This document shows, in pieces, positions 3,564-30,111 of a stretch of 64,000 nucleotides of DNA. The position numbers and the translations under genes were made by a program. The notes below the pieces were generated by a model. That model saw nothing but the letters and a program-made list of their open reading frames with translations, was not told the DNA's origin and ran no database searches. Positions within the stretch are counted from its first letter, which is position 1, and the number at the start of each line of letters is the position of its first letter. This DNA is from Saccostrea echinata (Eukaryota). The DNA is taken from the NCBI RefSeq assembly GCF_033153115.1, contig NW_026889794.1, positions 4,526,001 to 4,590,000 of the forward strand. The letters run 5' to 3'.

Positions 3564-6500
3564 TTACCATAAATCATACAAAGTATTATAGAGACAAATT
3601 GTAAAAGTCACAAATATCATAACAAATGTCCACCACTGTTTCATTGTTTTCTGACCTGAAAATACAGACAAACAACAATCAAAGTAATTAAAAAAAGGAC
3701 TTGTAACGACTTGTAAAGACGAATGTGTGCCATTATTTTAACCAATCAATTACTACTATTAAGTTTTTTTCACAAATTAAAAAAGACTCAAAAGGAAAAA
3801 GTATAACACTGCTGATTCTAGAATTGTTTTCGATCATCACAAATTAAGCAATATATGCACGCACCAAAGACTTGGAAAAGCGCTTCAGACGTCCACTAGG
3901 TTCAGGAATAACATGATTGTTTGAAATTCTTTATTGAATTTATAATTGGCAGTAACGAATTGATGTCCCTCGAAACACTCAACAGAAAACTATGCACTTT
4001 TCAAAGGACTCTATTTTTAAAATTTAAATATCCATGAAAACAACAATTATTTCACACATATTTACACTCTATTCAGAGCGTGAGTTAATCTATGAAATAT
4101 AAATAAAAAAGCTTATATATAATATTTATTCACACAAAGTAGATATCTCTTGTGCATGTCCCTGTGTACAGTTTTGTTCGTAAAACGTAACATTTCAGTA
4201 ATACACACGAAATCAATGTTCTAGTATTTATAAGTTTCTTTTTATCATGAGATATTTCTTTTCTGTCTGTTTCTTAAGATCAAATGAAAAAAGGAGGTAT
4301 ATGTATTCGCAACAAATCAATAGAAAGATGAAATAAAAACATCTTATCGTTGTTAGTGTCTCTAAATATACCTAAATAATTGTTAGAGTAAAAACGCTTT
4401 CCAAATAACAATTTAATAAAGTGATAAGTTTTAAAATTACCACATTTCGTCTACCATATGCCCATAAATTACTATTATTAATCATTAATTATGTTTAATG
4501 ATATACATACCATTGTTGCATTTTACGCCTTTCATCAATGGTTTAATGATGGCTTGTAGATACGAATGAACAAATGGCACTGCTTTGTCATCACAAAGTT
4601 CTTTTGTTTTATCATCTATACAGGTCGTCATTTTTGCTGCTACTCTGTGAATTCATTCAATATCAATTTAAAACTTTTAAAAATGGTATTAATCCTTTTA
4701 TTCAGAGATTTACAAGATTTTGCTATGCAAACAATTTTTAACGATGAATTTATCTGCAAGATTTTATGGTATTTTGGAGCAGCTTAAGTTTAAAGTCTTA
4801 GTCGTAAGTTCTTTAAATGGATCACTTAGATTGACGTCTCAAAATAAAACACTTGATTATTTCCTACAGTGATACAGTAGGCCTAACTTTACTTCCACTC
4901 AGATTTTTATGTTCTTAGGTAAAAAAAAATTACCTGCATTTTTCACTAGAAGTATCAGAACCCCTTTTGGTGTCTTGCTTTTCGATTAGTTGTTGGACGA
5001 GTTTCAAGCAAGACATTATGCTTGTTTGATTCACCACAAATTTGGTCATCACACATTGGAAATTTTCAATAAATCCTATTCAAGAGGGAAAAGAGGAAAA
5101 AAAAATAATATCACACAAATACCTTTTGGTTCCATCTTTTACTCATTTTTGCATTTTAAACCTATCTTCCAACTCGAGAAAAAGAAAGTCGAAACATTTT
5201 TTTCAGGCTATTTGGACATGTTTCATAAGAGGATCGTTACCGATATATATTAGAATGAAATTATCTATGTCCAAATAGCTGGATCTCACTTCCATTCTCG
5301 ATGACCATGTAGTGCAGCGAGAATTCCATTCCATCGAAAGCAAATTTTAATAACTTGCCTAGATGGCCGAGGGGTGTAGCGCGTCGTTCTTGCACTGCTA
5401 CGAGGCAGGTTCTACAGGTCAAGAGTTAAGTTACGGGTTTTGGCGGGAGTGAGTATCCTTGTACAGTGGGCCAAATGGTGTTTCCGCTGCTTCTCGCAGT
5501 TTATTAAAATAAAGCAGTTTTAAGCTTTTAAAGAAGTAATTTTCATGGAGTTGTCAAATTAATCAATTTTAAGGTAACAGAAGTAAAAAAAAAATATTTT
5601 CATTTTTCAAGACATGACCTTGTTAACGATTTTGTAACTCATAAATGGATTTTACGTCATTTTAAGCTCACCTGAGCCGAGGGTTCAAGTGAGCTTTTCT
5701 GATCAAAATTTGCCCGTTATCTATCGTCGTTGTCGTCGTCGTTGTCGTAGTAAACGTTTCACATTTTCATCTTTCTTCTTCGCAAGAACCACTGGGCCAA
5801 TTTTCAGTCAAACTTGCCCCAAATTATCCTTGGGTAAAGACAATTAAAATTTGTTCAAATGAAGGGCCACACCTTCTTCCAAAGGGAGATAAAATGATTT
5901 CGTGAAAAATTAATGGAATAATTTAAAAATCTTCTTCTTAAGAACAACTGTACTTGTACATATGAAACTTATGTGAAATCATTGTGAGGTAGTGTAGATT
6001 CAAAATTTTCATATCATGACCCCCGGGGGTAGGGTGGGGCCACAAAAGGTGATCAAAGTTTTACATAGGAATACATCAGAAAGGGTGGGACAACAATGGA
6101 TGATCAAAGTTTTAGAGAGGAAAACATAGGGAAAATCTTTAAAAACCTTCTTCTCAAGAACAGCACGCCATGATTGGTCATATTTATATTGAAGCATCCT
6201 CAGGTAGTGTAGATTCAAATTTGTTCAAAACATGACCCCCGGGGATAGGATGGGGCCACAATGGGCGATCAAAGTTTTACATAGGAATACACAGGAAAAA
6301 TCTTTAAAAATCTTCTCAAAAACAACGCCATGATTGGTCATACTTATAAGGAAGCATCATCAAGTAGTTTAGAGTCAGGTTTGTTCAAATCATTACCCCT
6401 GGGGATAGGGTGGGGCCACAATGGGTGATCAAAGTTTTACATAAGAATACAGGAAAAAATCTTTAAAATTCTTTACAAGAACAGCAAAGCTTTGATTGGT

Positions 6501-9500
6501 CATAATAATATTATTGCATCCTCAGGTAATGTTGATTTAAATTTCTTCAAATCATTACCCTCCAGGAGAATAGAGGGACCATAACAGGGTATCATAGTTA
6601 TACAACGAATATAAAGAATATTTCGATAAAATTTTCATCTTAAGAACAGTAAAGCCATTATGTGTCATATTTATTCATAGGCATCCTTAGGAAATGTAGA
6701 TTCAAGTTTGTTCATATCATAACCCCACCCCACTCCTCCGAACTACTTTTATATTTAAACTTTTCAATACTGAAATGATTTCTGCTTTTATCTACCAACG
6801 TGTGAGCGATGTTGCCCCTGGGCCTCTTGTTTGTGTTAGTGACGTTATGAGGAACTGAAGTTTTTAATAAGGGCCACAAAAAGTGCAAAAAAAAGAGAAG
6901 AGTACAAGTAATATGCTCTTGTGAAACATGGAGATTTGAAAATGTCACGATTATTTTTGGTTATCTTCTGCAAAAATTCCTAGTGCCTGTAAAGTGTTGT
7001 AGCATTCCATAAAAATAGGAAAATTCCGTATATATTGACAGTTTGAGATCCCCCTCTCCCTCTGGAAAGCAGACTGTATAAATTTGTACTTTTAATATAT
7101 AAAGTTCGGTATAGTATTACTGATCACATACTGTAATTTGAACAAGAAAACTACTGTAATATTTTTGTAATTTGCTTTGAGGTCAAAAAAACATTTCCCC
7201 ATATAATCCCATGGTAAGTGCAACTGTATTTTGAGATGGTCCCTTAAGATAGAAAAATATGCAGACAGTATATTTATGTTCCCCAAACGAAGTTTGGGAA
7301 CATATTGTTTTTACTCTGTTTCTTATTATTATTATTATTATTATTTTTCTTCCTGGGTACTTTTTTGTCCGTGAGTGATCTCCGAAACTACACATCCGAT
7401 TGAGGTGAAACCTTTTTAGGGTTAATAGGTATGTTATGTAGATTTGCGGAACGAAGGTCATTTTTCGCGCACGCGCATGCACGTGCGTGCGCGTGCAATG
7501 CGTAAAATGACCAATATACTTGATATAGCTGTAGCTTTTATATTTTTTGACGAAATGCTTTGATACTCAGAATATAAGGATATATTAATAGTGTAGACAA
7601 GATGACATGGTCAGAATGCGCATGCATGCACGTGCGCGCATGCGCATTGATTGAAATAACCAATACAATTGATATAGATTTAACTTGTACATTTTTTGAT
7701 GAATTGCATTGAAACTCAGAATATAAATATATATTAGAAGTGTACACAAGAAGACTTGATCAGCGCACACATGCATGCACATGCGTGCACGTGCGCGCGC
7801 GTGCAATGAGTAAAATGACAGATGTACTTGATATAGCTATAACTTTCATATCTTTTGATGAAATGCGTTGATACTCAGGATATCAGGAGATATTAAAAGT
7901 ATAGACAAGATGACATGGTCAGAATGCATATGCATGCACGTGTGCGCATGCGCAATGATTGAAATAACCAATACAAATGATAAAGAATTAACTTGTACAT
8001 TTTTTATGAATTGCTTTGAAACTCAGAATATAAATATATATTTGAAGTGTTCACAAGATGACATGATCAGCGCACACATGCATGCACTTGCAAGCACGTG
8101 CGCGCGCATGCAATGAGTAGAATGACCAATATACTTAATATAGCCAAAACTTTTACATCTTTTGATGAAATACTTTAATACTCAGAATATAAGGATATAT
8201 TAATAGTGTAGACAAGATGACATGGTCAGCATGCACATGCATGCACGTGCGCGCGTGTGCAATTATTGAAATAACCAATACAATTGATATAGACTTAACT
8301 TGCACATTTTTTGTTGAATTGCATTGAAACTCAGAATATAAATATATATTATAAATGTAGACAAGACGACATTGTCAACATGCACATGCGCGTGCATGCA
8401 ATGCTAAAATGACTAATATACTTGATATAGCTGTAACTTTTATACTTTTTGATGAAATGCTTTGATACTCAAAATATGTAGATATATTAATAGTGTTGAC
8501 AAGATGACACGGTCATCATGGGCATGCATGCACGTGCGCGCGCTTGCAATGCGTAAAATGACAGATATACTTAATATAGCCGATTTTTTTTTGTATCTTT
8601 TGATGAAATTTGAATATAAAGATGTATTAAAAGTGTAGACAAGTTGACATGGTCATTTTGAACATGCATGCCCGTGCCCGTGCGGGCGCGTGTAATGCGT
8701 GATAAAACCAATATACTTGATTGTTTTATTTAATGAAGCTTACAGGGAATAAGACACCAAAAGGAAGTTGGGGAGCGTTTGGGGAACATCTGTAACGGTC
8801 CCCGTTACAATTAATACTAGTTTACTGAAACTTTGCATGTACACTGAAATCAGTGTATGCTACACTTGCTATAAAGTAAAGAGTTTCTTTATTTTAGTTT
8901 TTACACAATAAAACCACAGTCGGCTCCCTTAAGTGAATTTTATTATGCTTTCTATATTATATTTCTTCACTAAGGGCAGCTATGCTAGTTTGAGTTATTA
9001 TGTATTAAATGTGCCTCAATTAACAGTATTGAATATCTTTGAAAAAAATTGTAATATATGTTCTTTAAGGTCTATAATTTTCTTCTATAATCATATAAGT
9101 TGAAACCCCTCTTACCTTCCTTTCCCTCAGAACATAAGAAGCTAGCAGCATTTAGAGATGTTTCTACAGAAAGTGTGCTTGGTGATTTACATGCGGTCCC
9201 GTATTCCTGCACACAGTTGCCTAACTGTTTTTGAATGCTGTGCCATTCAAGAAAATATATAAAATTAGAAATTCAGTACAATTTTCAACATCAATTGTTT
9301 ACAATTTCAGATATTAAAAATTGATGTCAAACGGTATAACGTGAAAGAATATCGTATCTAGGTGGTAGTGAGAGCACACCATATACATGTACATTTAATG
9401 ATGAAACGTTCAAGGGAATTTGATGATGATTTCAAATAAGTTAATTTTAAGAAACATAACATAATTTCAAACATGTATATTGATGAACTGAAATGAAAAT

Positions 9501-9870
9501 ATCACACTTGCCTACAAAATGTATGTACTGTTTTTTTAGTATCCAACGTCTTAATATCTGGTGATTTAAACATTTTTACGATTTCTTGTATAGAGAATTG
9601 GTTCATGCAATTCCGAATCCCAGTATTGTCACAATCTTGAGCAACTGTCCCTAAAAAAAACGAAATTAACTACACAAACAAGCAATTAATCACAAAGTGT
9701 GTGCATATAGCATGCTTAACAAACATCAAAAAATGGTTGTTAACTATAGGTGTCTTTGAAGAGTAAATATTTCCAACTTACAAGCAATAGTACTATGAAT
9801 AATTATTTTACTTACTTGACACAATGGCAAGCGATACAAGAAGGACAAATACCAAGCTTACAGATTTCAT
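3564..9870 (-). CDS. Gene A: secreted 12-Cys helical-module protein (DUF19/CPG4-like by recall), ~227 aa, hydrophobic C-tail (possible GPI/TM)
   Basis: Six exons spliced by hand: 9870-9816, 9650-9512, 9237-9116, 5075-4934, 4644-4511, 3655-3564 (684 nt, open frame). MKSVSLVFVLLVSLAIVSRTVAQDCDNTGIRNC...FLCSEGKEGFIENFQC...TTCIDDKTKELC...VKCNNGQKTMKQWWTFVMIFVTFTICLYNTLYDLW*. Signal peptide present; exon sizes, phases and Cys positions match genes B and C. Intron 2 has a GC donor. Confidence 0.85.
5662..6832 (+). mobile_element. HINE/Helentron-like non-autonomous element carrying ~165-170 bp Cg170-like satellite monomers
   Basis: 5' agctcacctgagc..aagtgagc, (gtc)n microsatellite, tandem units with catgacccccgggg..ggggccacaa (6015, 6231, 6391 and others), 3' gtgagcgatg..gcccctgggcctcttgttt hairpin; T-rich flanks. 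Confidence 0.8.
7274..8823 (+). mobile_element. HINE-like element with a ~150-bp tandem array rich in (GC/AT/AC) alternation, in gene A intron 3
   Basis: Inverted repeat atgttccccaaacg / cgtttggggaacat, (att)n microsatellite, 3' hairpin tgtaacgg..ccgttaca; units caagatgacatggtc at ~7598, 7747, 7906, 8054, 8213, 8362, 8500, 8640. Confidence 0.8.
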
Positions 9871-10949
9871 GATTATAATCCAATAGGTATATTTAGCTTC
9901 AGTATATGTTCATGTTTATTTCACAATGGAAAAACCATATTTAAGTACGTTTCAAAAAAAAGTGGGTCCCATCAGCCATGTACTTCAAAACACTTGACTT
10001 TGCAGCTAGTGCAATTAAATTCAAAAATAACTGCTTAATTTAGTATCCCAGTTTATAATATCTTGAAGAACACATTGCTGAAATGAATGCAAAGGGTGTC
10101 CTTGATAATATTACTTACAGCTTTCTGCACAAAGCAGACAACACGAGGGCGGAGAGATAATACATACTCCATAGAATATACAAGTTTGCGAGTCATTATA
10201 AATCTGGGTTCAAATCAAGCCGCTTTTTACGCGGAAGGGGGGGGGGGGTATTTCAATGTTCTCATTAGGATCATGGGACATGTATCTGTATTCAACTTTT
10301 CAGCAAGCTCACTGAAAAACGAATGAGTATATTTCTTGCATGTTGTGACTTTGGTGAGGGCCCTCTCGTCAACAATTATTATTCATCATCAGACAATTTG
10401 TCCGATGTGAGATGAGATACATGCTCATGAGCTAAGAGAACTATAGTTTTATGTTCTCTTTGTTAACTGGCTTTGTCATTTGTAAGCCTTGTGCAATTTC
10501 CGCTGTAATGTAGTGTTCGGAAGGACGTGTCATTCTGTTGTGAATGCACTTATTACTTTAGAACCAGCGCACGTGGAAAGTCATTTGATTCAGATCTCCA
10601 TCCGTACATAACAAAACAGAGTGATTGGAACTTAGTTAACGTGTGATAAATATCTACCTGTTTAATTAATACCAATAAAAATATAATCCAGGAACACTCA
10701 TTTGATAAATATGAACTGATTAATGCAGTCACCCAGTCACAATTCCAGATTCGTTTTGGTTTGCTACATTCTTATAAAACAGAATTTCCGTACTTTTCAT
10801 GCGTGGGTGCAGGGTTTTTCATCATCCATTGATCAATTCGTTATAATGGTATGCCTGTCTTCAATGCCAGTTGTGCACATGCAAACCAGTTTAGATTTAT
10901 ATATAGTATAAATCCAGGATTAATAGTATGACAACACCGAAACAAAAGA

Positions 10950-11895
10950 ATCCGTGAGATTATTAATTTCGTATTGTGCTATGCCGAATAAAATAACATT
11001 GCAATAGTCTAAATGTGAAATAACTAATGATAGAACTAAAATTTCCGTAGCTTCCTTCGTTAAATATTTGCGGATGCTTTTGATCCTTAAATAATTTAAC
11101 ATTGCTGTTCGACATTTCCTATTTACATGTTCTTTGAAATTAAGATTTTCATCTAAAAATGCACCCAAATATCGTATACATTCTTCGGACTTTATTTCAT
11201 TTTCATTAATGTTAATCACTTTTGTAGCACATTTTTCTAGTTGTTTTTTACTGCCAAATAGAATAAATTCTGTTTTTGATGCATTCATTTTTAGTTTATT
11301 AGCGTTCATCCAGTTGTTAATAATCTTTGCACAATCCTCAAGCTCGCGAATAGCCTCAATTTCGCTGTGTTTCGACGTTGGATTAAAGCGTGTAATTGCG
11401 GTATGGTCATCTGCAAAGCCGAAAACTGATATGGAAGGAGGAATGACATCAAATATAGTTCCTGCGTACGCCAGATATAACCAGGGTCCTAAGCAGCTAC
11501 CTTGTGGAACGCTGCATTGCAGCTGACGCACAGATGATGAAATGGAATTTACACATACTTGGCAGCCACGAGGTCGCAAGTATGAATCTACCCATTTTAA
11601 TGCCAAGCCACAGATTCCATATTGTTTTTGAAGTACTTTTATTAATATATCGTGGTCTACAGTATCGAATGCGGCGCTGAGATCGATTGCTATAAGAGTC
11701 GTTACGTCTTGTTTCTCCATAGAGTCAAGCAGGTCATTTACGAGTCTTAAAAGCGCAGATTCACAAGAATGGAAACGTCTGTATGCCGACTGATTTTTGG
11801 GGAGTAGATTGTTTTCATTAACATGCGAATTGAGTCTACAGAGAGCGGATTTTTCGATAAGTTTTGAAAGAAATGACAGGTATTGGCCTGTGTGT
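10950..11895 (-). mobile_element. L2/Crack-like LINE reverse transcriptase fragment
   Basis: ORF 10920-11720: DLSAAFDTVDH, VPQGSCLGP, GFADD, LKMNASKTE, ISHLDYCN. The frame continues upstream (QSAYRRFHSCESALLRLVNDLL). Truncated at both ends. Confidence 0.88.
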
Positions 11896-12154
11896 AAGTC
11901 TCTCTCACTGAATAGAGAAGTTCGTTGAATTCCATGTTTGTGTACATGCTCGTCATATCAGTTATTAATAATGCGTTTGTTGGTAGGCTCCTGATGATGG
12001 CGGATTTGCAGCTAATTAATAAACTATCAAAATCATAAGCCTCGTATATATCATACCACCAAAACACTAGATTAGTGTCGAGTCAAGTGATCTGAGGTAC
12101 GTGGCTGATGGGAGCCACTTTCTTTGGAAAAAATTATTACTATTTTTTACTTAC

Positions 12155-12209
12155 CTGACACAATGGCAAGCGATACAAGAAGGACAAATGCCATGCTTAC
12201 AGATTTCAT
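12155..12209 (-). other. Duplicate of gene A exon 1 (signal peptide) with its upstream flank; possible alternative first exon
   Basis: MKSVSMAFVLLVSLAIVS+G|gtaagt, near-identical to 9816-9870. Homology extends ~75 bp upstream (12210-12287 vs 9871-9950). ATG and phase-1 donor are intact. Confidence 0.75.
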
Positions 12210-12962
12210 GATTATAATCCAAGTATGTTTAGCTTTAGTATATAGATAATGTTTATTTCACACTGGAAAAACCATATTAGAGTACGTGTGTAAAGAGAGA
12301 TATGCATGGCTGCCTCCATACGTCAGAAGGTGTGTATTAGAAGACTAAACTGTCTCATTTACAATACTCATTATGCAAATTACTTGGTCAAGGTCTTGTA
12401 AAAAAAATTCTTTAAATGATATTACTCAGTAAAAATTTCCTGAAACTAAACATTTCGAAATTGAATTGATACACCTTAGTATTCAAAAAATTTACAAGTA
12501 TTGTTTTCAATTTGCATTTTACACATTCCGTGTTTTAATTATTATTTTTTTTATTTTCTTTATCTCTTACAATAAAGAAACTGATTGTTTAAGTGTGATT
12601 TTGAGGTCTCAGTCACATCTATGTAACAAAATAAATTCTTTGCAATCCATGACAATCAATGCGTTTAAATTTCTCGATAATATTTACTACGTGCTACAAT
12701 ACATCAAGGTTTCATCATTATTTGCTTTGAAACTTATGCATTGTGATATCATGTTATTTATCCCCGGCTCAAGACGGGTATACAGACATTTACACCCGGT
12801 TGCTATCCAATCAAATATCGTGTTACAACCTAGATAGGAAATAGATTTTATTATATTCACTTATATTATATAACACTGGACTGATAAATTTTTGATCCAA
12901 GCCAGTTAACTGATTGCAAAAAGAATTAAAATACACTTAATTACCCTTAGCATCTAAGCCTT

Positions 12963-13679
12963 CTCTAACAAAAAATACTATAGTGAACTATAAATCAAAG
13001 TTTCAGAGATTTTACTATAGTTAATCAAAGTTCCAAAGTTTTTACTGTAGTAAATCAAAGTTCCAAAGTTTTCACTATCGTAAATCAAAGTTCCAAAGCT
13101 TTCACAATAGTTTATCAACTTATTAAAGTATTTTTTAATATTGTTTTTATTTTGCCGTTTTTAGGGGGTGGAGGTTGTTGTATGTCTTAATTTAAATTTA
13201 CGAATTAGTTAACTGAAATGCAATATTTACATTTATAAACTGAAAAAAAAAATACATGTACAATACAATACTGAAGTTGTTGGAACAGGTATTTTTGTTT
13301 TAAATGACGCAATATTTATTTTATAGTATATTATTTTCCTTTCTCCATAAAGAGAACTTGCATTACACCTGCATTAAATTAAATACACCTAAATAAATGT
13401 TGCTTATCTATCGGCGCCAGAGACAATCTTACATTAAGTTCATTTCTTGTACATTAATTTCTATTAGGGAAAGGGTCGGTTTTATACAAAGTTCTCTGAT
13501 GCTTTTATGAACATCTTAAAATGTCAAAAATGGGAATCAAAGACATAATTCGACGGTTTTACGATAGTAAATCAAAGTTCCAAAGTTTTCACTATAGTAA
13601 ATCAAAGTTCCAAAGTTTTTACTTTGATACTATAGTTAACTATAGTAAACTATAGTTAACTATAGTATTTTTGTTAGGG
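12963..13679. mobile_element. Relative of the 32613 MITE with a ~430-bp unrelated core
   Basis: Same TIRs (ctaacaaaaaatactatagt / actatagtatttttgttaggg) and 30-bp repeats agtaaatcaaagttccaaagttttcactat at both ends. Confidence 0.75.
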
Positions 13680-13714
13680 TTTGACTCCTCTTGCATTTCT
13701 ATATTACACTCATA

Positions 13715-14678: not shown

Positions 14679-14727
<49 letters not shown>

Positions 14728-16454: not shown

Positions 16455-16770
16455 CTACTACAGCCCCGCTGGGCAAATCGTTGCTGATGATGTCAGTATA
16501 ATTGAAAATGAAGACCTAAAATCAATCATCTTAAACGGTCCTAATTGCGATCATTCATTTGGCGACAGAACTTCATTTCTATTCTGAATTCTGTCAAAGA
16601 TTATGCCAGACTTTCGGCCAAATTTGAAAAGAAAAATCTGAACACTTTATCAGAATGGATTAAGTGTTTTAGAAATATATAAAGAAAAAAGAATCGTATA
16701 AGAAATTTAAAAGGCAAAATGGAAACAATCTATCCTTCCATTTTCACTAAATCGGAGGTGGTAAAAGAAT
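16455..16770 (+). mobile_element. Penelope-like N-terminal coding remnant
   Basis: YSPAGQIVADDVSIIENEDLKSIILNGP-like decayed frame. Confidence 0.45.
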
Positions 16771-16917: not shown

Positions 16918-19900
16918 CTACTGTAATGAAATATCAGTTGTAAATGCCCATACGAAAGTTTGGATAAGTATGAAAAAGCAATTGTTTCCCAGAGTAGGAG
17001 AGGTTATGGTACTTGAACTTTCACCATGCTGGTCCATATAAACATTGCTGAGATATTTTCTTGGAGAATAACCTGCAATTAATAACATTAATGTTTTCTG
17101 ATATTTCAACTGTTACTCATTTAGAAACAAAGGTAAAAATTGATTGATATGCAATATTTAGATCATAAGTTTTATATTACCCTGAAATCTAAATTTTAAG
17201 ATATTCTTTATCCGGAAAGTTTGATTTTAATAACTGTTGATGATGAGATATTTTCACCTCTAAATTCTATCTTGCTTACACAATATCTTTTTGATATGAA
17301 GTTCAATGATGAACTTGTCAGTTTAACACTTAACAGAATTTTAAAAACATAGATGTTTTGAATACGAGAAATTCAAGTATGTGCATCAAATTTAAAATTT
17401 CGAAAAATCGCAAATATTTCAAATGTTGAAACTAAATGTTTGAAATAAATTTATTTTATGATAAAGATTGTGAAAATTTAGATTTAAAAATGTTTCGGAT
17501 GAAGCTACAAAATTTAACAAAATTTTATCCATGTTTCGAAGCTAAAGTAATTGGAATTTGAGTTTAGATTTTAGACTTAGATTAAAGTTTTTAAATGTGG
17601 GATTTTGAACAAAAAATTAAAAATTCCAAAAGTCTAAAACAGAAGTTAAAGCAAGTATAACAGAAACCGTGGACCTACCATTTTCACATGTAATATTTGA
17701 CATCAATGGTCGGATTTTTGCTTCAAAGTAAGCATTCGTGAATGCTCCTGCTTCCTCACCACACAATGTCCTGCTTTTCTCTTGAAAACAACTAAATGTC
17801 TCATTTGCTGCTCTAAAAAATTAATATTAAAAATATATAAAAATACTGAACATTTGAGAGCATAACTTACATGAATGTTTCACACTTATATATTCCTTCA
17901 TGTAATGCATAAAATTATGCTTAGAATGCAATTTACAAATTAAGTACATGTATTACTTAAGTTTTTTTTTAAATGCTTGTTTTTTTTAAGAGGGGAAAGA
18001 ACCATGTTAAATTGCATCTATTTTCAACGTACGAAAATATACCTGCATAGATTTTCAGAAACTTTGCTTGAAATGCCAGAACCACTTGCATCTGCCTCAA
18101 TTATGTTTCTCGTTAGTTTTGCCATGTAAGTTTTTGTACAGAAATCAAGACCTTTGTTAAGGAGAAGGTCGTACATCACACACTGAAAGTTCTTTACGAA
18201 GCCTGTAAAAGACAAGTTAATCATTTTATTATTGTTCCATTAAAATGTACAGTTTCATTCAATTACTTTTTATTTTAAATTTCGGAAGCATAATTCAAAC
18301 TCTTAAGGTACTTTTACACTTAAACATATACCTTGTCTTCCTACAGAACACAGGAAGTTTTCAGCAGAAAGCATGATATCTATGTCAAGAGAGATGCTGT
18401 TTGTAAAATGACATGTGGTCTTGATGTCTTCCAAGCAATGGCTGGGCTTCCTTATGATACTGTTCAATACAGAAAAAAAAGGCTTATTAACCACAGCACT
18501 TACTTGAGGAACATTTTTCTCTTTTACCCTTTCATAAGTTACCGAGCCAAGAATTTCCTTGACTACTCAAAAATCATATTCATTAATAATGGCAAATTCT
18601 TTCTAAGTCGATTTGAATACTCAAGAGCAACTTACAGCAAGCACAATTGTGGAATCAATTTGGGAATTTTTCCGGTAATAACTAATTATTTACAAGCTCT
18701 TGGGGGTATAATGTCATATTTCAGTATTCATTGAGGTTGTAAGACCTTGTGCAAGAGACATCCACGAAAACCACTCAAATATTGTACATCTAAGAAAAAA
18801 TGATTTCATAATTTCTCCTCTTAGTATTAAATCAGCTTTAGTAGTATGCATTATCTCTATAGAATATTATGGAACGTACATAGAATCAACAACTTTTATC
18901 AAAATCTTCAAGAAAAATTGATCCAAATTCACATTAGTTTCATAACATTAAACAATAAAGACGAAAAACTTTCTTAAAGCATTCGCTTAAAGACGGCTTA
19001 AAGGTGGTTTAAAGAGGGACTAAAGAAATTGATTTCTATACTCCACCATTAAGGATGAGATTTACTCAAATGATAAAAAATTCCACTGATAACAACGAAA
19101 ATCCAATTATTGTTCATTGTAGACCTAGACTGTAGTGTTTTTATTCACTTTCAAATAATTAGATATTTCTCTTCAAATAATAAAACCGTTCACGGTAGCT
19201 CAGTCGGTAGAGCGCTCGCTCCGTGATCGGGAGGTCGTGAGTTCGAATCTCGGCCGCGACAGACCTAAGTCGATAAATTAATAGGTAGCAACTGTTCCTT
19301 CGCCATGCGCTCGGCACTTTGGAGTGAAAAGTTGCGGGTCTTTCGGATGAGACCTTAAAAACCAAGGCCCCGTGTCACGGCAGGCGTTGGCACGATAAAG
19401 ATCTCTCACTGCTCAATGGCCCTGAGTGCCGAGTAAAGGTCAAAATTTGAAGCCCTTCACCGGTATATGGTGACGTCTCTATATGAGTGAAAAATTCTCG
19501 AATGGGACGTAAAACAACATACAATCAATCAATCAATCAAATAATAAAATTTCAAATTTTCAAATGGATACTGAGTCGTAACATGAATATTTTGTCTATT
19601 TAGAACAATCTTTTGATCTAACGTATAGTACTTTATAGCATTGCATTTCTGCCAACTAAAACCCTGCGTAAACGTCATCCTTAAGCAACCTTTAAGCTGC
19701 AGCTAATAAGTGCTACATGTAAATGTCCAAACTGTTTTAAGCCACCATTAAGTAACCTTTAAGCTCTAGCATATAGGTGCTTAATGTCCCAACTTCTTTA
19801 AGCCATTTTTAAGTAATTTTTAAGCCACTTTTAAGTAATCTTTAAGCCAACTTTACGCAACTCTTTAACCAGTCTTTAAACTACAGTGTATTAAGTTAAA

Positions 19901-22900
19901 ATTATCTTTAAGTATCATTTACGCTAGTAAAATCTTACTCAATTCATAATGCTGACTATCTAATTTTAATTCTAAGTTCTGTCAATGCGTATAAACATAA
20001 ACACTTAGAACTGCTCCTGCAAGTAATCTTAAAAATTTCGCTACCAAAAAATCTTTGTTTAAATACTTGTTTTAAATTATTTTTATCCTAAACACATACC
20101 TTATAATTCAACGAAAAGAAAAAAAAAAACACGTTATAATTTTCTTTCGTGTGTGGAGAGTCATGTTCCGCTGCTGAATTCATAAGAAGTATTATACGAT
20201 AGAGTTCTTTTGTTCTTAAATTAAAAGAAGATTTTGAATATTCCGTAAATCGAATAAATCGAACTTAGATATTAAATTACACGCACTTTGTTTTGATATA
20301 AACGCATATTGTTATCATTTTTTTTTAATTAAAGACGACCTTTAATCCATCATTAAGGACCTTTAAGCCGTCTCTAAATTATTTGAAATTAAAAGCGTAT
20401 TACGTTCCTTATGGCCACAATTTATAAATTCTGTGTTTTTACTGTGGATAAATCGCGGTAATTAACCAATTATTGACTCAAATGAAAACCCCTGGATTAA
20501 AAATCTAAGTTAATTAGATAGCTATCACGTGACCCTGTGACGTCAAAGGCGACAATGGCTGATCAGCTCTTCATTAATCTTACTAAAATATACGCGATAC
20601 AACCTGAATTTTCTGCGTTGTGAATGACCAAATCACTTATTTTGTCGATATAAAATTGAATATTCAACCTTATATGTTAGAATTGTAAGCAAGAAAAAAT
20701 CTGAAAAATCTAACATTGTAAAAATAGCAGCGACGATAGCGAGGGAGACGCAGCGAAGACGAAGAAACTCGCCATAACAATGCAATTTGATTTGTCATCT
20801 TATCACATGTATTATTTGATTCACAAATTAAACATTATATAACTTTGTTATTCTTCGTTTTGTATATAATATTAATTTATGCAAGTCTTCATATGTTTTT
20901 TAAAGGATGGCGATCTTGAAAAATAATTTCCCGATCACGAAACATTGCCGTAATTAGAGCTACAGCTAGGTTCTAAATGTTTTGAATAAAAAACGAAAAT
21001 ATCTTAAAAGCCTTATACCTTAGAACTAATTAATGTTTCTATGATAATTGAAAATCATATAAGGAATTAATTTTTTCAGCATTTTTCGTAATTTAGCTGC
21101 ATTTGTCATTGATAACTCCGTTAATAGTGTGCATATTCTCATCTCTCTATCACCGAATTGTCGCCTATGACGTCAGAGCAGTATTTCGCCGAAATCCGAC
21201 TGAAATATGCATATTGCCGTATTTGAATTTCAACTCTTAATATCTCTTAAAATATGCTTTCAACAACGATTATTGTATTCAGCATTTTGATGAATAAGGT
21301 TATAGATAATATTTTTCATAAAATTACGATTTTTGAAAGATCATGCGATAAGTCCTTTAAAGGAAGTTTTTCTTGTGCAAATGCTGCAGCTGTTCTGAGT
21401 ATTCTCTTAATATTCAAAATATTTCCTTTCTGTAGCTTTGCTAGCATGAATACTAAAGGCCGTAAGTACATACAGCAATGTAACTAGTAACTAATACGCT
21501 TGTTTTTATGCGACAAGCATCAAGAAGATGTTTAGTTACAATGAGAACAAATCAACATGATTCATGAAACAGTTTAACTCCATGTTATATACACAGAGAC
21601 ATTTCATTGGTCAGAAAGTTTCATTCTTGAGTTCAAGTTTTCTCAGGATGCCCATACTTTAAATTTATTTCATATTCAAAACTATTTGAAAGTTTTATCC
21701 CTTTATCAGAGACTTAAAAATATGTAATAAATAAGGTTTTTACCTGCAATATTCATCAACAGTCTCTTGAGCATTTAAAATCTTTGAATTGTTCATTAAT
21801 CTTATTTCCTTTATGAAATCTGGTAGAGATGACTGTATTAGGCAGTTAGAAAATCCGTCTTTGTTACATCCATGCACATGTAGTAGCGTCTCTAAAATGA
21901 AAATATCCTTGTTCTTTCTGAATACTTAAGTCAATGAGATTACTTCTTGATTAATTTTAAAAGTATCTTAAACTTCAGAATGAATAACATGTCAAATGAA
22001 GTGTTCACATTACATGAATATGCTGAATATTGATTGTGTTTCTTTTATTTTGTAAAGAAGTTCACTCTCCTGATACACAGAACAGTGATGTAATTTAAGC
22101 AAAAGTTACCACTGCTCAACTTTTGAATTGAAGAAGATAACATCAAATGTGTAATGATATTTCAGACTAATTTGAAATAACTATCATTCTGCATGGTTCT
22201 TCAAGGGTCGTCGTTTAACTTGGCGACCCCGTGCCAGTTAAATTCCTTAGTTTCACAGTTAAAAAATTAGCGCCATAGTTCCGCTAAGTAAAAAATTAGC
22301 GGCTCAGTAAGATCGTCGTCTATCATGAAGATTAAATTTTATGTATAAATTTATAAACTCAAACATGAACTGAACCTCCATATTATGTACTGTTTTTTAA
22401 TGCTTAACCGTTATTTAGTCCCATTAGAGACAATGTTGGGCTTGCACATTCAATTATCTGCTAGGCCTCGCTGGACTTTACGCATGAATGAAAAGAGACA
22501 ACCTTTTTCACACTCCCCGGTAATTGCAAATGATTTTTAATGCTAATTTTAAAACTACTTAGCTTTACTAAAGATAACCACGTCTCTAAAATTGCATTGG
22601 CACTGTAAGTCAAACATCGTACGTGTATCGTAATCATGTATTGCTGTAAAGTTGAAAAATGAACGATAATCCATCAAAGCAGCATTTTATGACTTCAAAC
22701 AGCTAATTTAAATTTGCATTGATACTGTAGTCAACCGAAACCAATATTGCAAATATATCTGGCTGATGAAAGCTTGATTGTGCTAGAAATTCCTCTGTCC
22801 TGACACTGTAAGTGTATAATTTACATTTTGTAAAAAAAAAAAATATCTTTTGAAAAAATCAGATTAAACACTTAAAACTTGTTATTACTGGTACTAATAT

Positions 22901-25125
22901 TTTCAGATTTTTATAAGCTTATTATTTTTTGTTTTTTTAAGTACGTTGTGTTGTGTTGGCTGGGGGCGGGGTGTCAAAGAAAACTTGTATAACGGAAACG
23001 TTCTTGTTTCTCTTTTACACTATGTTAAATTTGATATCCATTAATTGATTTTAATTATCGTTTGATTTAAATCCCAATTTGCCAAATATTTAATACAACT
23101 TGTGTATTACAATAGTGATTCAGAAAAGTTGTGTTTTTCAATTTATTCATTGTAACTTCCCGAATTCAGTCGCTAAAAGACCGCGAATATTAGCATTTCG
23201 CATACGTCTTGCGCCACAGTTAAATTTGAAATGTTGAGAATTCGAACCCTGATTCTGAAGTTTGACATCACTCGTTATAAGGGATTTCAATTCAATATAC
23301 ATAATTTTGTCTTTCTCTATTAGAAGATTTAGTGAATTATTTATTTTTTAGCGAAATTATGTATTCGCGATTGATTTTTGTACATGTAAGTAAAAAAAGG
23401 TAACAAAAAACAAATTCATGAATGAGATTTGGATTTTTTTTTCAATGGTGAGAAAATATGAATCCCTCTTAAATGAGTAGACATAAAATATCTAAAAACA
23501 CATATGACGTTCTTTTGTCTTTTTTTCAAGCCACAGATAGCTTAATTTAAAAATATACATACTATTTTCACACGATATGTCCTTCATCAATGGCTGAATC
23601 GCAGCTTCCGTTTTTGTTCGCATAACCTTGCTTGCTTCGTCACTGCATACTCTTTTTCCTTCTTCTTCCATACAAGTTACAATTTTATTTGCTGCTCTAA
23701 ACGGTTATATATAGTTTTATAGTTTTAAATTTGATATAACTTTAAAAAAATGTATACACTAACACGTTTGAGAGAAAAATATTACCTATTAAAGATTTTG
23801 ATCATTAGTAATCAATAATTGATTGTTCATATTCCCATTGAAGGTCATGATACTTTAGGATAATATTTGAATACATAACTGAAGCAAAATTGAAAGTATG
23901 TTTTCATAATCATTACAACTTTTACAAAAGCTGTGTAAGACTTCTTATTTTTCTATCATGTGATATATAATTGTACATAAAATTTACCTGCATATTTTGC
24001 CATAATTATTATTACCACTTCTTTGGGCCTCTATGAAAGAATCGAATAAATCCAACATATCTTTTTGGCAACTCTTAAAACTCGTTTCATTTTGGATATG
24101 ATCGAGAATCACACATTGAAAATGATCAATGAAATCTGCAAAAGAATTTTTTAAAGCTGACCTATATTCAGATATGTAAAAGGTCAAATATATAAATCAA
24201 AGAAAGCTATAATGTTTTTGAGATTAGCGTATTAGCAGTGTTAGAAGTGACAAATCTGTATTGCAATATTTTTTCCGTACTATGTGTCAAGCACAATGTC
24301 ACTATTTATGAACCATAGTACCTCGTTTTCCCTCTGAACACAGGTAGTTTATCAGAGAAAGCGCCATGTCTATTGATAAAGTGATTCTGTTTGTAGATAA
24401 ACATGTTGTTTTGACGTCCTGTAGACATGATGTTAAGCCCTTTGTTATGCTTTCCAAGAAAAGAAAAAAAAAAAAAAATTAAAAATTTAATATTTGGTGC
24501 ATTTAAAATTTTCATATTAAAATCACTTTAGGGTGCAAATGATTACTTTGTAATAAACATTGAATTAAAAATCATATAGGCTACATTCCCTACTATTCAT
24601 TTAAAGAGTAGTAAAAGAAAACGATATGGATTTTTTTTTATATGAAGCACCTTTCCATTTAAATACATGTAGAACGATCCAGAGAACGTCATTAACTATT
24701 TGTACATGTATTAAGGATTTTGTATCAAACTAAATCAGCACATGAACTAACAGTTGGTAACTTACCTACAATATTCCTCTACAGTATCCTGAGCTTTCAG
24801 TATCCTTAAAATGTTTGGTGAGTTAATCTTGTGTGTATAATTTAGTAGTGATGGTTGCATAAAGCAATTAATGATCTCCGTATGGGTACATCCTTTAGCA
24901 AAGGTCCCTAAAACAAATGCTTCAATTATTTCTGGTAAATTCATACCCTCATCTATTAAATACAGTACCTAGGATAGAGGCAATAAATCGTGAAGAGACG
25001 TCCGATTTGTTGTGTCAGTTTTGCACGTTTTACAAATTAGGATTATTTCGCTATAAATAAATGAGTTAAAACTTGTCTCACTTACCTAGTATACTAAGAA
25101 GTGTAACTAGTAGGAGGTAGACCAT
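16918..25125 (-). CDS. Gene B: secreted protein with two tandem 12-Cys modules, ~438 aa, Ser/Thr linker and hydrophobic C-tail (possible GPI signal)
   Basis: Ten exons: 25125-25086, 24907-24766, 24449-24322, 24135-23988, 23696-23563, 21891-21744, 18459-18332, 18202-18043, 17812-17679, 17072-16918 (1317 nt, open frame, all GT-AG). Starts MVYLLLVTLLSILGTFAKGC; ends SSSTITSPTLGNNCFFILIQTFVWAFTTDISLQ*. ORF-track fragments 24762, 23984, 18303, 18024 and 16918 are its exons. Confidence 0.82.
19186..19536 (+). mobile_element. Full-length tRNA-derived SINE (Meta + Deu/Nin-like body), (CAAT)n tail
   Basis: A box gtagctcagtcggtagagc, B box gagttcgaatc, central tcggatgagac..aaacc..ggcccc..taaagat, and a 13-bp TSD tcaaataataaaa (19173-19185 / 19537-19549). 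Confidence 0.9.
20446..21356. mobile_element. Kolobok-like non-autonomous element, left end unclear
   Basis: Right end gcgataagtcct|ttaa; internal inverted pair tgacgtcaaaggcgacaat (20538) / attgtcgcctatgacgtca (21157). Confidence 0.45.
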
Positions 25126-26257
25126 TCTTACTAATTTTAATTCATGATGACATTAATTTTATTCTCAATATTTTATATCAGATGATCATTTCTTCATGGA
25201 AAATCCAAAAGGGTTTTTTACGCATGCATACTCTTTCTATGCGTCAGTTATTTGCATATTTTTTTTTCACTGGAGGCAGTAAATGCAATTAAGTTAAGAA
25301 GCTAAGTCAATTTTTAAGCATGTATTTTTTTTTTTTGTTAACAAGTATATTTAATTTGCCTTTGTAATTTGAATGCAGCTTGCTTAAGAATTGTATTTTA
25401 GGTAATTCTAAACATGGACATAGACTATAGATCTCGAATTATATAAATTTACTTGGACCCTTGTTTAAGTTTTTAGACTTCGATGAAAACTTTATATTAA
25501 GGAATACATGTAGTAACATGGAATGTTTAAAACTACGAAAAAGAATTTTTCCATGAATAAGATGTGTACACCTCGAAACATGCCACGATCTATGATCCGT
25601 TTGCAAACATGAAAAAATGATAAATTTTCAGAACTATAGTGTTCCAAGGAACACGTTTGTCACCTCCTTCGTGGCATCATTAAAGATAGCAATAAATCGA
25701 AGGGTGGTCAGTTATTTATTGCCAACTAGCATATCGATCATTATTTATAACAGCAAAGAAAAAATCCACAAATATTCAGACCGATTAAATGTAGCATTTA
25801 TCATATAAAATCTGACATTCACGTAGAAATGTGATTCCCTAGCTTTCAAAGCTAGAGTGAATAATGAAATTGAAATAAAATATTACAATTTTTTTTCATT
25901 TTGAAACATATTTACAAGATTAAATTTCTTTTTGTCCGAGATTAAACTACAAATAGTAAAATAGCTTGATTTCTTCATAAAGTTATTGTTTCAACCATAG
26001 GGGTGGTTAAAAAATTGACGGAGAGAGAGAGAGAAGTTGGAGGGGCTTTGACTGAGCTTGTGAATTTGCGGAAACGTGGTACATGTAATATAAAGAATAA
26101 CTGTCCATTTTTTTGGTTTTATGATGTGATCATGCAATGGTTTGCTTGAGCAATTTAAAATATTACCTCTAGGAAGATCGCAAATTGCTATATAGAACTC
26201 AGTAGGAAAGATAATGCAGAAGATAGTTCATTCTTGTTGATTTCATATTTATATTAA

Positions 26258-27038
26258 AGGTGCTTAGACACAGATTTGAACTTAATATTTTCTCAAATTT
26301 TCTGTATAATATCACGACTTATATATTGCAATAGCATTTCACACGAAAATATAATAAAAAAACTTATTTTATCTGGAAATTATTGGAACTACGAATTCCG
26401 GGACGCGTTTGATTAACACATCTTTGCACTTACACAAATTTTAACATTATCCTTAATATTTAAGAAAAGAAGCGATTTTGTTATGTAAAAATGAAAAATA
26501 TTACATCTAAAATCCAGAAAATTCAGAGTAGAAATGTTCGAAAGCAAAACCAAATCACCAGTATTGTCAGTACGTGCTCTGTGATGTGTATAGAATTTAA
26601 CAAATTAAACACATCCGTGAAACGTAAACTGTTTTTGTAAACAGGGCACGAGCTCTGTTATTATTAATGTTTACGATTCACCGGGTGTGTTCAATTGTTA
26701 AACTCTGCACACACCACTGAGCACGGACTTACAATACTGTGAGTGAGTTTTGCTTTCGAACATTTCCACTCTGAATTTACTGGGTTATAGTTTTAATATT
26801 TTTCATTAATACACAACAAAATTGCCACTTTTCTTCAGTATTAAGAATAAAATTAAAATATGTGAAAGCGCAAGGATGTGTCAATCAAACGCGTCCAGAA
26901 ATTCGAAGTTTTAATAACTTCGAGATGAAATAAGATTTTTATTGTATTTTAGTATGAAATGCTATGGCAACATATAAGTCACGAAATTATACCGACAATT
27001 TGAGAAAATATTAACTTCAATTCTGTGTCCAAGCACCT
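26258..27038. mobile_element. TTAA-flanked (Kolobok-like) foldback element with ~330-bp inverted arms
   Basis: TTAA|aggtgcttagacacaga ... tctgtgtccaagcacct|TTAA. Arms are colinear inverted copies, e.g. ggacgcgtttgatt 26401 vs tcaaacgcgtcc 26885. Confidence 0.85.
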
Positions 27039-27758
27039 TTAAATAGAACAACACCTATTCTAATTTTAATATAAATCAGGTAATCATCCTTAAATGGAGA
27101 ATCCAAAGGGAATTTTTAGATATGCGTGCTGATTCTATGTGTCATATATTTGCATATATGAATTCTTCATGTTGTTTTTCTCAAGTATAAATATACAAGG
27201 GTTGTTCGGAAGTTATTGAGACATTGTGTATATTCTTTCAAATGAACATAGTTTGGTGAAAATTGGCATTTGCGTTAAACTTACAAAAATAAATAAATAA
27301 ATAGATCAATTAATTAATTAATTAATACATAAAGGCAAGAAATGAAATATTTCAGAAATATTTTTATTTCTTGTTATGGTATATCAATGAATTGATGATA
27401 TGGTAACCCGGCGCAGTCAAGAAATCGGATAATGACAATTAGTATATTACTACGTAAATAGTTCAGGTTGGACAAGTGGGAAAATTATATAAATTATGTT
27501 TGTAATTTTTAAGATTTTTTTTTTTGGTCTTTGTTTTATGCAGGTTTGATAGAATTTGGACAAGAAATACAGAGATAGAAATCAGATAACGACAGCAAAA
27601 TGAATTGATGTCAAGGCGGAGCAATGAGCATATCTGGCATTTTGTGTCATTTTCATTTTCAATTCAGTCTTCAAAGTAAAATTAAAATACTGTTTAAAGA
27701 GTACACAAAATGATAAACATACTACACAAAACTGTAAATGAGCAAAGTTTAAAAGGAA

Positions 27759-27790
<32 letters not shown>

Positions 27791-27977
27791 TTAAGGCAAA
27801 TGAAAATTTAATCATTCTGGTAATAACAGAGGTGAATCATTTATTCAGAACATTACCGATAAAAAGAATAAATAATCTTAAACGGACAATTAATAAAAAC
27901 ACTGTAATAAAAATATTATTAAAGCAATTGAACATTTAAACTTATGGATTTCTCTTCAATTTTGCAAGGTTTAAACG

Positions 27978-30111
27978 TCATAATCCATTTGTGACTGGTC
28001 TAGGAAGGCTATAGAGGATATGACATTTACAGTAATCCTCAGGACAGTGTCCTGCTTTACATGTGTTTAAACACCAGGAAGCAGCGTCATCTTTGGCGCC
28101 AAATTTTGACAAGACTGGCTCACACACAAGAACCTGTGTTGGAATTTGGCAGTCACAGGTACAGAGGTTCTCGGGACAGTTACCAAGCTTACAGTTGGTT
28201 TCACACCAGCCATCCATCTCCTTTTTTGTGCTCTCCAGGACGGGTGTGGCAGAGCTTTGAGGATATTTATAACAATATTTTATACAGGTTTTTCCAACGA
28301 TGTGCACATTCTGTGAAGTGGGATATTCATTTGGTGAATGACCTGTGATGGAGAATCATAAAAAATTATTGAATAGGAATAAATANNNNNNNNNNNNNNN
28401 NNNNNNNNNNNNNNNNNNNNNNNNNNNNNNNNNNNNNNNNNNNNNNNNNNNNNNNNNNNNNNNNNNNNNNNNNNNNNNNNNNNNNNNNNNNNNNNNNNNN
28501 NNNNNNNNNNNNNNNNNNNNNNNNNNNNNNNNNNNNNNNNCAAATGTTCAGATGTACAAATTTGTATGAAGTGTACTCACTGTGGTTACACTGTACGTCT
28601 TTCAGTAATGGTTGAAGGGTTGCTTCGAGATAATGATGGACAAATTGACCTGCAGATTCCCCACATGATATCTTAGTTTTCTCCTCAATGCAAGTTATTG
28701 CTTCTTTTGATGTCCTGCAAGATAAAACAAGCCCCATAAAACTCTGTAAAATAGCCGTAATTATCGAAGCATCGAAGCAAAATGAAATACATGTCATTCT
28801 TTTTTACAAATTTGAAATTTAATCTTTATCGTGTTTCAAATGAAGAAAAATTCTTAATCAAATGTCTGAAAATAGTATTTTACAGTTATCCCTAAAACAG
28901 CCCCATAAATACATACATTGCTTTAGCAACAGAAACTAAAAAATGCATTAATCCAAAGCAGACATTAAAACTACGACATCGTATATTTTCAGGTATGAAC
29001 CTTTACCTGCATTTTTCACTGGAAAGATTCCGACCATTGTCCTTGGCCTTGCTTACATTTTTGGACAGCTCCATCATATCATTCATACAAGTCAATGTGC
29101 TGGTTTGAAACGCATCAGTCATCAAGCAGTGGAAATGATTAATGAAACCTGTACCGTTGTGAAAATACAAATTCTATGTTTATTTTACCTTTCTTGATAT
29201 TATTTGTTTTTTATTGTGCAAGATGGTAATTTTTTTATTAGTTGCAGTTTTTATATTTGTAAGGTAATTACAATCATTTTTGACTCATTAAAAATTAAAG
29301 AATGCTACATTGTTTTACCTTGTTTACCATCTGTGCACAGAAAATTTCCAGCTGATATGATGGTGTCTAATGACAGAGTGTCGTCGGAAGGACAATTAGT
29401 TCTGTAGTCTTGCATGCATAAATCGAGTTTTGTTTGAGCACTAAAAGAACAAATTTACGGCATTTAGTCGTTTCAAAGATAAATTTCGAGAGAAGAATTT
29501 GAAAGAAATAATGTTTTTCAAACGGTTCTGAATACAGTTTATGTATCAAAAAGTGTGCAAGTCTTCAATATATTCATTTTTACAATTTCTTGAAGAGAAA
29601 AAAAAACAAAAAAAAAACGATCCATTTCCTTTAAGCTCCTTTCTATCAGACCTCAGTTAAAAAAAATCCAACTACACAAAAAGTGGACTTACCTACAATA
29701 TTCCTCAGTTGCATATTGGGCATTCAAAGTCTTCAAGAATTCAGGTGTTCTAAACCTGTTCATGATTTCTGGCACAGATGACTCACTCCAGCATTTTAAA
29801 ACACCATTAATGTCACACTGTTGTACAGTGGTTCCTAGTAAAAATATATTTCGCGATTAATCCAAAATGCTATTCAATTTTTTTTCCTAAGGATCGAGGC
29901 CCTTAAAGTTTCTATTAATTCATTTAATTTTAAACACAGGAATTGGCAAAGCTTCTTTAATTTCATTGTGTAATAAAAGTAAAAAATATAGCTTTATCTT
30001 GTTGATAAAATTTAGGAGTTGCTCTGTTTCTTAGAACATCTGTTACTTGACCGTGGTTCTCTGCTTACCTGCTATAACGACAGACAACACCAGTATAGGT
30101 AGCTGCTTCAT
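27978..30111 (-). CDS. Gene C: secreted 12-Cys module protein with two C-terminal WCxx[NT]CxxGxCPxxxCxC repeats, ~315 aa
   Basis: Exons 30111-30069, 29834-29693, 29440-29319, 29148-29007, 28714-28581, 28342-27978 (948 nt, open frame, GT-AG). [21 protein letters not shown]...; tail [21 protein letters not shown] ... [20 protein letters not shown]. The last intron contains the N gap. Confidence 0.82.
28386..28540. other. Assembly gap (155 N)
   Basis: Run of n inside gene C intron 5. Confidence 1.

Follow-up and report, generated by a model that had tools for sequence, protein, structure and literature searches.

What would an oyster do with three neighboring genes for secreted proteins that share one cysteine-rich module and differ in how they end? 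The question is raised by an AT-rich stretch of the 923-Mb Saccostrea echinata assembly (C45:4526001-4590000, 64,000 nucleotides in all, hereafter 'the window'), the minus strand of which carries three spliced genes that we call A (positions 3564-9870), B (16918-25125) and C (27978-30129). All three are composed of a signal-peptide exon, one copy (A and C) or two copies (B) of a module of about 180 residues, and a last exon. Our examination of the gene models, their transcripts, their relatives and their predicted structures leads us to propose that A, B and C are probably a tandem cluster from an oyster family of extracellular proteins, in which a module distantly related to the DUF19, CPG4 and DUF1397 proteins is displayed on the cell surface (A and B) or tethered to chitin (C).

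The module was delineated by using the four exon open reading frames (ORFs) of the first B module (B1) as BLASTP queries against the complete set of 1447 stop-to-stop segments in the window. With E values from 1e-5 to 3e-13, every query recovered four copies and no more, invariably on the minus strand, and there were no other matches of note. The four modules (A, B1, B2 and C) are each encoded by four exons, termed e1 to e4, whose lengths in this order are 139/142/148/142 nucleotides for e1, 122/128/128/122 for e2, 142/148/160/142 for e3, and 134 in every copy for e4. Module lengths (537/552/570/540 nucleotides) are all multiples of three, and the intron phases run 1-2-1-2-1. The module is thus flanked by phase-1 introns, so that copying it or fusing it to further exons leaves the reading frame intact; the two modules of B are joined directly in this phase (23563 to 21891). 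Pairwise identity among the four is 34-42%, and 12 cysteines align, three per exon. The module is probably extracellular and stabilized by six disulfides. These results bear out in detail a preliminary description, prepared from the letters of the window alone, that had reported four copies of four exons with this phase pattern, three cysteines per exon and an invariant 134-nucleotide e4. Gene models and database proteins likewise agree with its account of one- and two-module forms, of hydrophobic ends in A and B, and of two cysteine repeats at the end of C.

The loci themselves are already known, and it is the combination of domains that is new. RefSeq models all three genes, each as an S. 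echinata 'uncharacterized protein' (LOC133201717 for A, LOC133201749 for B and LOC133201688 for C), and so the cluster is 'invisible', as the preliminary description put it, only in a bacterial-style ORF track and not in the annotation. A search of a library of 1.84 billion proteins with the last exon of C returned P0001 (321 residues), which is identical to our model of that gene. The preliminary description had put the start of C at 30111, and RefSeq begins the gene at 30129. Profile searches, whose rows consist of database proteins and single exons, retrieved the other two proteins. P0105 (227 residues, labeled 'isoform X2') is identical to the joined A model, including an AG/GCAAGT donor after e1, and P0090 (438 residues) equals the B model to the end of module 2 and then continues into a last exon at 17072-16918. 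An alternative end for B would be reached if e4 were read through to a stop codon at 17617-17619 (the last codon ending at 17620); we prefer the RefSeq tail exon.

Public sequencing data provide evidence that genes B and C are transcribed and spliced. A run search pointed to six small runs. In five of them, 9-13% of the words sampled from the B region are present, about the share that the B exons alone would give. Contigs from four runs (X1, X2, X3 and X5), whose type is only guessed as RNA, were aligned to positions 23450-29449, a span that takes in module 1 of B and gene C up to its e2. Because the contigs remove canonical introns precisely, every skipped stretch having GT..AG ends on the minus strand, we conclude that spliced transcripts exist. 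A 1286-nucleotide contig of X1 unites 23563-23696, 23988-24135, 24322-24449 and 24766-24907 and then jumps to 25086, which corresponds to exon 0 through e4 of B; it runs a further 699 nucleotides past 23563, equal to B module 2 (570 nucleotides) plus 129, and is compatible with both ends of B noted above. For gene C, contigs of X2 and X3 comprise 27801-28342, 28581-28714, 29007-29148 and 29319-29440 (e2-e3-e4-tail), and contigs from X1 and X5 span e4 together with the tail exon. The B and C junctions that had been predicted in this span from sequence are matched exactly.

One of these junctions also settles the content of an assembly gap. Exon e4 of C ends at 28581 before a GTGAGT donor, CACAG precedes the first letter of the tail exon at 28342, and the two exons are joined directly and in frame (phase 1) in all four runs. 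Therefore, the run of N residues at 28386-28540 is intronic, and conceals neither coding letters nor an additional exon. In addition, one X3 contig lacks 31 nucleotides of the 3' untranslated region (UTR) of gene C (27894-27926) and differs at several exon positions, and probably stems from an allele or else from a close relative.

The copies have diverged strongly, and this alone could be taken to mean that they are decaying pseudogenes or an annotation artifact. We give this explanation practically no credence, given that all frames are open, splice sites are canonical or conserved, four runs yield spliced contigs, and orthologous proteins retain all 12 cysteines. The orthologues of C are 86% identical in S. 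cucullata, 67% in Ostrea edulis and 64% in Crassostrea virginica, and C additionally matches a Logan transcript cluster of 78 members. Sequence searches uncovered no members outside Ostreidae, a result that depends on word matching and on how long the queries were, and so is weak evidence of absence.

Three paralogues reside on the same contig as A, B and C. Two of these, D (about 33 kb below the window; L001, G000:C45 4484001-4494000) and E (about 155 kb below; L004, G000:C45 4366001-4376000), are of the A type with a hydrophobic tail, and both have a 134-nucleotide e4. The third, F (P0092; L002, G000:C45 4349001-4359000), is of the C type, carries a long mucin-like linker rich in Ser, Thr and Pro, and lacks this e4 length. 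A GC-AG intron with the AG/GCAAGT donor follows e1 in both A (window positions 9510-9511) and E (L004 near 5100), whereas D has GT at this site. Separately, an open frame of 428 residues occupies positions 8534-9817 of L002; it contains a degenerate repeat resembling the tail and matches no Pfam family.

A tree of 13 modules, in which all 12 cysteines align, unites the hydrophobic-tail forms A, E, D, B1 and B2 in a single clade (support 96/98), and places B1 and B2 as sisters (92/93). The latter arrangement fits an internal duplication within B. The C-type modules from four oyster species fall outside the hydrophobic-tail clade, and F is very divergent. With a midpoint root only, the tree does not fix the sequence in which tails were swapped. 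The history that we envision is one in which the module would have been duplicated in tandem inside B and also combined with last exons of two kinds, each of which may dictate where the module resides.

The first kind of last exon, which is present in A, B, D and E, encodes a polar spacer and a hydrophobic C-terminus. In A, the sequence N-N-G is followed by six polar residues and then by a strongly hydrophobic stretch of about 16-23 residues (Kyte-Doolittle (KD) value > 1.8), with a few more residues after it; B ends in a Ser/Thr-rich stalk and a moderately hydrophobic segment. Hydropathy analysis otherwise reveals hydrophobic windows only at the N-terminus, and the sole C-terminal window is that of A. 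Small residues, a polar spacer and a hydrophobic end without basic residues constitute the typical layout of a glycosylphosphatidylinositol (GPI) attachment signal. Judged by eye and by hydropathy only, A fits this layout well and B moderately, and no basic residues follow the hydrophobic stretch in either protein. Thus the hydrophobic last exon is most likely a putative GPI-attachment signal, or else a membrane span, and in either case would anchor the module at the cell surface.

If the membrane span were the correct choice, A and B would be type I single-pass proteins with very short cytoplasmic tails rather than GPI-anchored proteins. The strength and length of the hydrophobic stretch in A, with its few trailing residues, would suit such an arrangement. 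We regard it as unlikely, since general knowledge of GPI signals favors what is seen here, namely N-N-G and a short polar spacer before the stretch and no basic residues beyond it, and since the stretch in B is too weak for a typical span.

The second kind of last exon, which is found in C and F, encodes a linker and two six-cysteine units. In C, the units conform to the consensus D-x-W-C-x2-N-C-x2-G-x-C-P-x3-C-x-C, the positions of which are invariant or nearly so across the aligned tail-bearing proteins. Cysteines are spaced as C-X16-C-X3-C-X4-C-X4-C-X1-C in unit 2, whereas the first interval of unit 1 is X22. This twin repeat is matched by 86 library proteins at E <= 0.001. We scanned 79 tail-bearing proteins for other domains (77 of the 86 and two other cluster members) and, at E <= 1e-5, recovered LPMO_10 in nine and GH18 in two. 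The only other partner is an EGF domain in one protein, no other enzyme domain recurs, and 67 of the 79 have no recognizable partner domain at this threshold. The repeat lies C-terminal to the LPMO_10 and GH18 domains. Two fragments, P0083 and P0085, show an N-terminal part that we take to be the end of a GH18 domain, and then a Ser/Thr linker and two repeats. In the S. echinata genome, six of the nine other tail matches reside 0.4-2 kb downstream of LPMO_10 exon matches on the same strand (C2 and C54), and the genome has at least 27 such exon matches. As a broader observation, the LPMO_10-type genes of this oyster commonly end in the twin six-cysteine repeat (G000:C2 32372273-32373727; C54 near 7.43, 38.56 and 42.05 Mb).

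Judging from these sequence associations, we lean slightly toward the view that the C tail is a shuffled module that probably binds chitin. Such a tail would tether the modules of C and F to chitin, for example in the organic matrix of the shell or in another chitinous structure. The idea that C is a carbohydrate-targeted form, which had been advanced in the preliminary description, gains real support from the recurrence of the repeat after LPMO_10 and GH18 domains and beside LPMO exons in the genome. It is also conceivable, but unlikely, that the tail does not bind carbohydrate and accompanies secreted enzymes simply as a knot for protein-protein contacts, for metal binding or for an inhibitor-like role. 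Its fold is without a solved relative, and the large majority of tail bearers with no recognizable partner could be counted in favor of such a role. In opposition to this, the sole recurrent partners are two unrelated families of chitin-active enzymes, and in both the repeat follows a linker at the C-terminus. Carbohydrate-binding modules are usually located in just this way, at the C-terminus and after a linker. The best part of an AlphaFold2 model of the tail attains predicted local distance difference test (pLDDT) values of 87-91; the model has no relative in the PDB, the best Z score of 2.5 in a structure search permits no conclusion, and a search of the ESM Atlas with the tail gave no usable match.

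The fold of the module itself was modeled with AlphaFold2 from a shallow alignment (17 rows, 12 of them single exons). The predicted structure is all-helical, with pLDDT values mostly between 79 and 93, and structure-search matches fall in two stretches, at about residues 21-88 and 89-197, which suggests a two-lobed helical bundle. Each half of the module contains a single 'Cys, then C-x8-C-x7/8-C' motif, and when the N-terminal half is aligned to the C-terminal half with hhalign (P 0.014), two 'Cys then phase-2 intron' junctions come into register. This correspondence is suggestive of an internal duplication within the module, but stops short of showing one. Foldseek found nothing in the PDB at E <= 0.001 for the module model, and a wide VIA structure search (best Z 7.9) returned generic helical bundles that were rated uninformative, such that no conclusion was drawn. 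Designed helical repeats that emerged from a PDB sequence search with the family profile had E values of 0.1 or worse, and were set aside as spurious.

To which known proteins, then, might the module be related? The preliminary description had noted a likeness to DUF19, CPG4 and the insect 27-kDa hemolymph proteins (DUF1397), and had proposed a Pfam comparison. None of the three families exceeds its cut-off. DUF19 (PF01579, gathering score 23.2 bits) gives no match at E <= 10 for A, B, C, F or orthologues, DUF1397 (PF07165, gathering score 25.7 bits) gives none on any member, and exon-by-exon scans produced only noise. The likeness persists at a weaker level. CPG4 (PF15481) matches B, and no other family member, in three stretches of the C-terminal half of the modules (E 2.6e-4), with 21.9 bits where the cut-off demands 32.7. 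In a feature search of the ESM Atlas, the nearest neighbor of the C module is a DUF19 cluster (0.89, 200/256 features), and further neighbors are an arthropod cluster, CPG4, and DUF19/DUF1397 clusters. The Pfam description of DUF19 specifies 12 conserved cysteines, and a DUF19-type layout defined in this way fits the 12 aligned cysteines in 13 modules, the signal peptides, and the presence of one or two copies per protein. Because two independent, weak lines (the Atlas neighbors and the CPG4 match) agree, we consider the module a probable, distant member of a DUF19/CPG4/DUF1397 superfamily, as far as can be judged from sequence, and do not file it under any single Pfam family. It would then be a very distant lophotrochozoan relative of these small secreted proteins.

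Several observations weigh against the overall proposal. Of the family's database proteins that were scanned, none scores above the cut-off of any Pfam model. Six-frame searches of the genome were empty with DUF19 and DUF1397, a weak result given that the exons are short, and with CPG4 produced one weak match only, elsewhere in the genome. The Atlas score of 0.89 is below 0.9 and is rated by the tool as a lead only. Neither Foldseek against the PDB nor the VIA search revealed a solved structure resembling the module or the tail. The C-terminal stretch of B is, as described above, only moderately hydrophobic, and we found no published measurement of chitin binding by the twin repeat, for which this activity is only suspected (PMC9156745).

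Some of these points are equally those that would be expected if the module were an orphan of the oyster lineage, helical and stapled by disulfides, whose resemblance to the DUF19, CPG4 and DUF1397 cysteine pattern is merely convergent. Members have been found by sequence search only in Ostreidae, no Pfam match exceeds a cut-off, and an Atlas score of 0.89 arises by chance a few times in 100. This possibility is to be taken seriously, but we consider it somewhat unlikely: the Atlas and Pfam, which are independent methods, converge on the same three related families, and silence outside the oysters carries little weight given the word-matching and query-length limits of the searches.

A different affiliation is hinted at by RGM_N, which matches B at E 7.8e-5 (23.3 bits, just below the cut-off of 24.2), the S. 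cucullata orthologue at 23.5 bits, and A at E 0.12. Together with the GPI-like appearance of the C-termini, these scores could indicate RGM-like GPI-anchored co-receptors whose module is a domain of the RGM N-terminal type. The match on B, however, spans only profile positions 19-47 (29 of 70), encompassing a single C-x8-C-x7-C motif, and Pfam reported an RGM_C domain in no member, making this identity very improbable. Both this match and that of CPG4 fall on the 'Cys, then C-x8-C-x7/8-C' motif. No solved structure of the DUF19, CPG4 or DUF1397 families turned up in our structure searches.

Returning to a module that is probably a distant relative of DUF19, CPG4 and DUF1397 and would be displayed on cells or on chitin, we note why its endings matter. 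These three families include many secreted invertebrate proteins, some of which respond to infection by induction, and no biochemical role has been assigned to any of the three. The last exons of the putative oyster branch suggest a destination for the module, either the cell surface or chitin, and this narrows the search for function. Likewise, the twin six-cysteine repeat, which was known only as an unexplained appendix of the insect enzyme LPMO15-1, is seen here also after GH18 and after an unrelated 12-cysteine module. Its occurrence in several contexts marks it as an independent domain and as a candidate for a new carbohydrate-binding module. Three 'uncharacterized' RefSeq loci also gain a domain architecture. 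A bolder speculation, which we view as improbable, is that the modules on membranes (A, B, D and E) and on chitin (C and F) form a matched pair system, and bind each other or a common ligand. If this were true, then the system would link secretory epithelia with the chitin-based scaffold that their cells build, it would offer the first functional handle on the orphan DUF19/CPG4/DUF1397 superfamily, and the LPMO-type twin repeat would be an autonomous, shuffled chitin-binding module.

Table 1. Positions of the exons of genes A, B and C and of the assembly gap, numbered from the first letter of the window.
Feature	Positions	Strand	Basis or remark
Gene C exon 0: start codon (ATG), signal peptide, phase-1 end; second in-frame ATG at 30111	30069..30129	-	Identical to P0001 N-terminus
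Gene C e1, 142 nt, 3 Cys	29693..29834	-	Loose X1 contig end at 29443 runs on into e1 sequence
Gene C e2, 122 nt, 3 Cys	29319..29440	-	Contig pieces in X2, X3
Gene C e3, 142 nt, 3 Cys	29007..29148	-	Joints 29148/29319 (X2, X3) and 28714/29007 (four runs)
Gene C e4, 134 nt, 3 Cys	28581..28714	-	Splice sites and contigs
Assembly gap (N run)	28386..28540	.	Inside intron between C e4 and C tail exon
Gene C last exon: linker, twin six-Cys repeat, stop codon	27978..28342	-	3' UTR extends to about 27801
Gene B exon 0, signal peptide	25086..25125	-	Joint 24907/25086 in X1 contig; matches P0090
Gene B module 1: e1 24907-24766, e2 24449-24322, e3 24135-23988, e4 23696-23563	23563..24907	-	Four pieces contiguous in X1; P0090
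Gene B module 2: e1 21891-21744, e2 18459-18332, e3 18202-18043, e4 17812-17679	17679..21891	-	BLASTP and splice sites; RefSeq model P0090
Gene B last exon: Ser/Thr-rich stalk, hydrophobic C-terminus	16918..17072	-	RefSeq model
Gene A exon 0 (proximal), signal peptide	9816..9870	-	P0105
Gene A exon 0, distal copy with 5' flank; possible alternative first exon	12155..12209	-	Sequence likeness
Gene A module: e1 9650-9512 (GC donor), e2 9237-9116, e3 5075-4934, e4 4644-4511	4511..9650	-	Joined model identical to P0105
Gene A last exon: N-N-G, short polar spacer, hydrophobic C-terminus, stop codon	3564..3655	-	P0105 and hydropathy

The surroundings of the three genes exhibit several repeats. Exon 0 of gene A is duplicated along with about 90 nucleotides of its 5' flank (12100-12300 versus 9760-9960 on the minus strand); the copies are 88% identical over the whole aligned stretch and more so over the exon and its 5' flank. 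An ATG and a GTAAGT donor are preserved in each, and the junction residue is Gly in the distal copy, as in B and C, and Arg in the proximal copy. Given that RefSeq labels the proximal form 'isoform X2', it is likely that gene A has alternative first exons. Between the two copies lies a reverse-transcriptase fragment on the minus strand (10920-12067; RVT_1, E 1.8e-18), which is probably a long interspersed nuclear element (LINE). The 4-kb intron 2 of gene A holds satellite-like tandem arrays at 6082-6560 and 7475-8580, with units of 160 bp and of 149/307 bp in 3.5-7 copies. A foldback element of about 790 bp (26254-27042), composed of nested inverted repeats whose arms are 76-88% complementary, separates B from C. 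In each of the four runs, contigs that are 90-95% alike pile up very deeply on this element, which is therefore present in many copies and may be transcribed.

Comparison with known systems shows where the oyster proteins conform and where they depart. Like the oyster family, the DUF19 proteins of nematodes are small and secreted, with one cysteine-rich domain in one or two copies, but the oyster module has about 180 residues compared to the 157 positions of the DUF19 profile. We know of no DUF19 protein with a hydrophobic or chitin-type tail. Caenorhabditis elegans has 51 DUF19 genes, whose products are 140-220 residues long; 42 have a signal peptide, and 14 are induced by infection (PMC3534327). 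A Crassostrea gigas protein, K1PB63, has been named a 'DUF19 domain-containing protein' (PMC10058639) and is a possible lead; it did not appear in our family profile search. The chondroitin proteoglycan 4 domain (CPG4) is an Atlas neighbor and matches the C-terminal half of the B modules; its profile of 94 positions, however, amounts to about half of an oyster module. DUF1397, the family of the insect 27-kDa hemolymph protein, is likewise an Atlas neighbor whose members are secreted and of unknown function, and to our knowledge none carries an anchor or a chitin-type tail. A DUF1397 protein increases on infection in Galleria (PMC4224417), and the family also occurs in centipede venom (PMC4379518).

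For the tail of C, the closest parallel is provided by the insect group I AA15 LPMOs (LPMO15-1; lytic polysaccharide monooxygenases), which have a C-terminal motif of 74 residues with two six-cysteine repeats of the form C-X15-C-X3-C-X6-9-C-X4-C-X1-C; this motif is unrelated to CBM14, and its authors suspected chitin binding, which was untested there (PMC9156745). The two tails resemble each other in having two six-cysteine repeats in about 74 residues with nearly the same spacing. They differ in the third interval, which is 4 in the C tail and 6-9 in the insect motif when compared by the published spacing. They differ also in context, in that the repeat of C and F follows a 12-cysteine module and not the catalytic domain of an LPMO.

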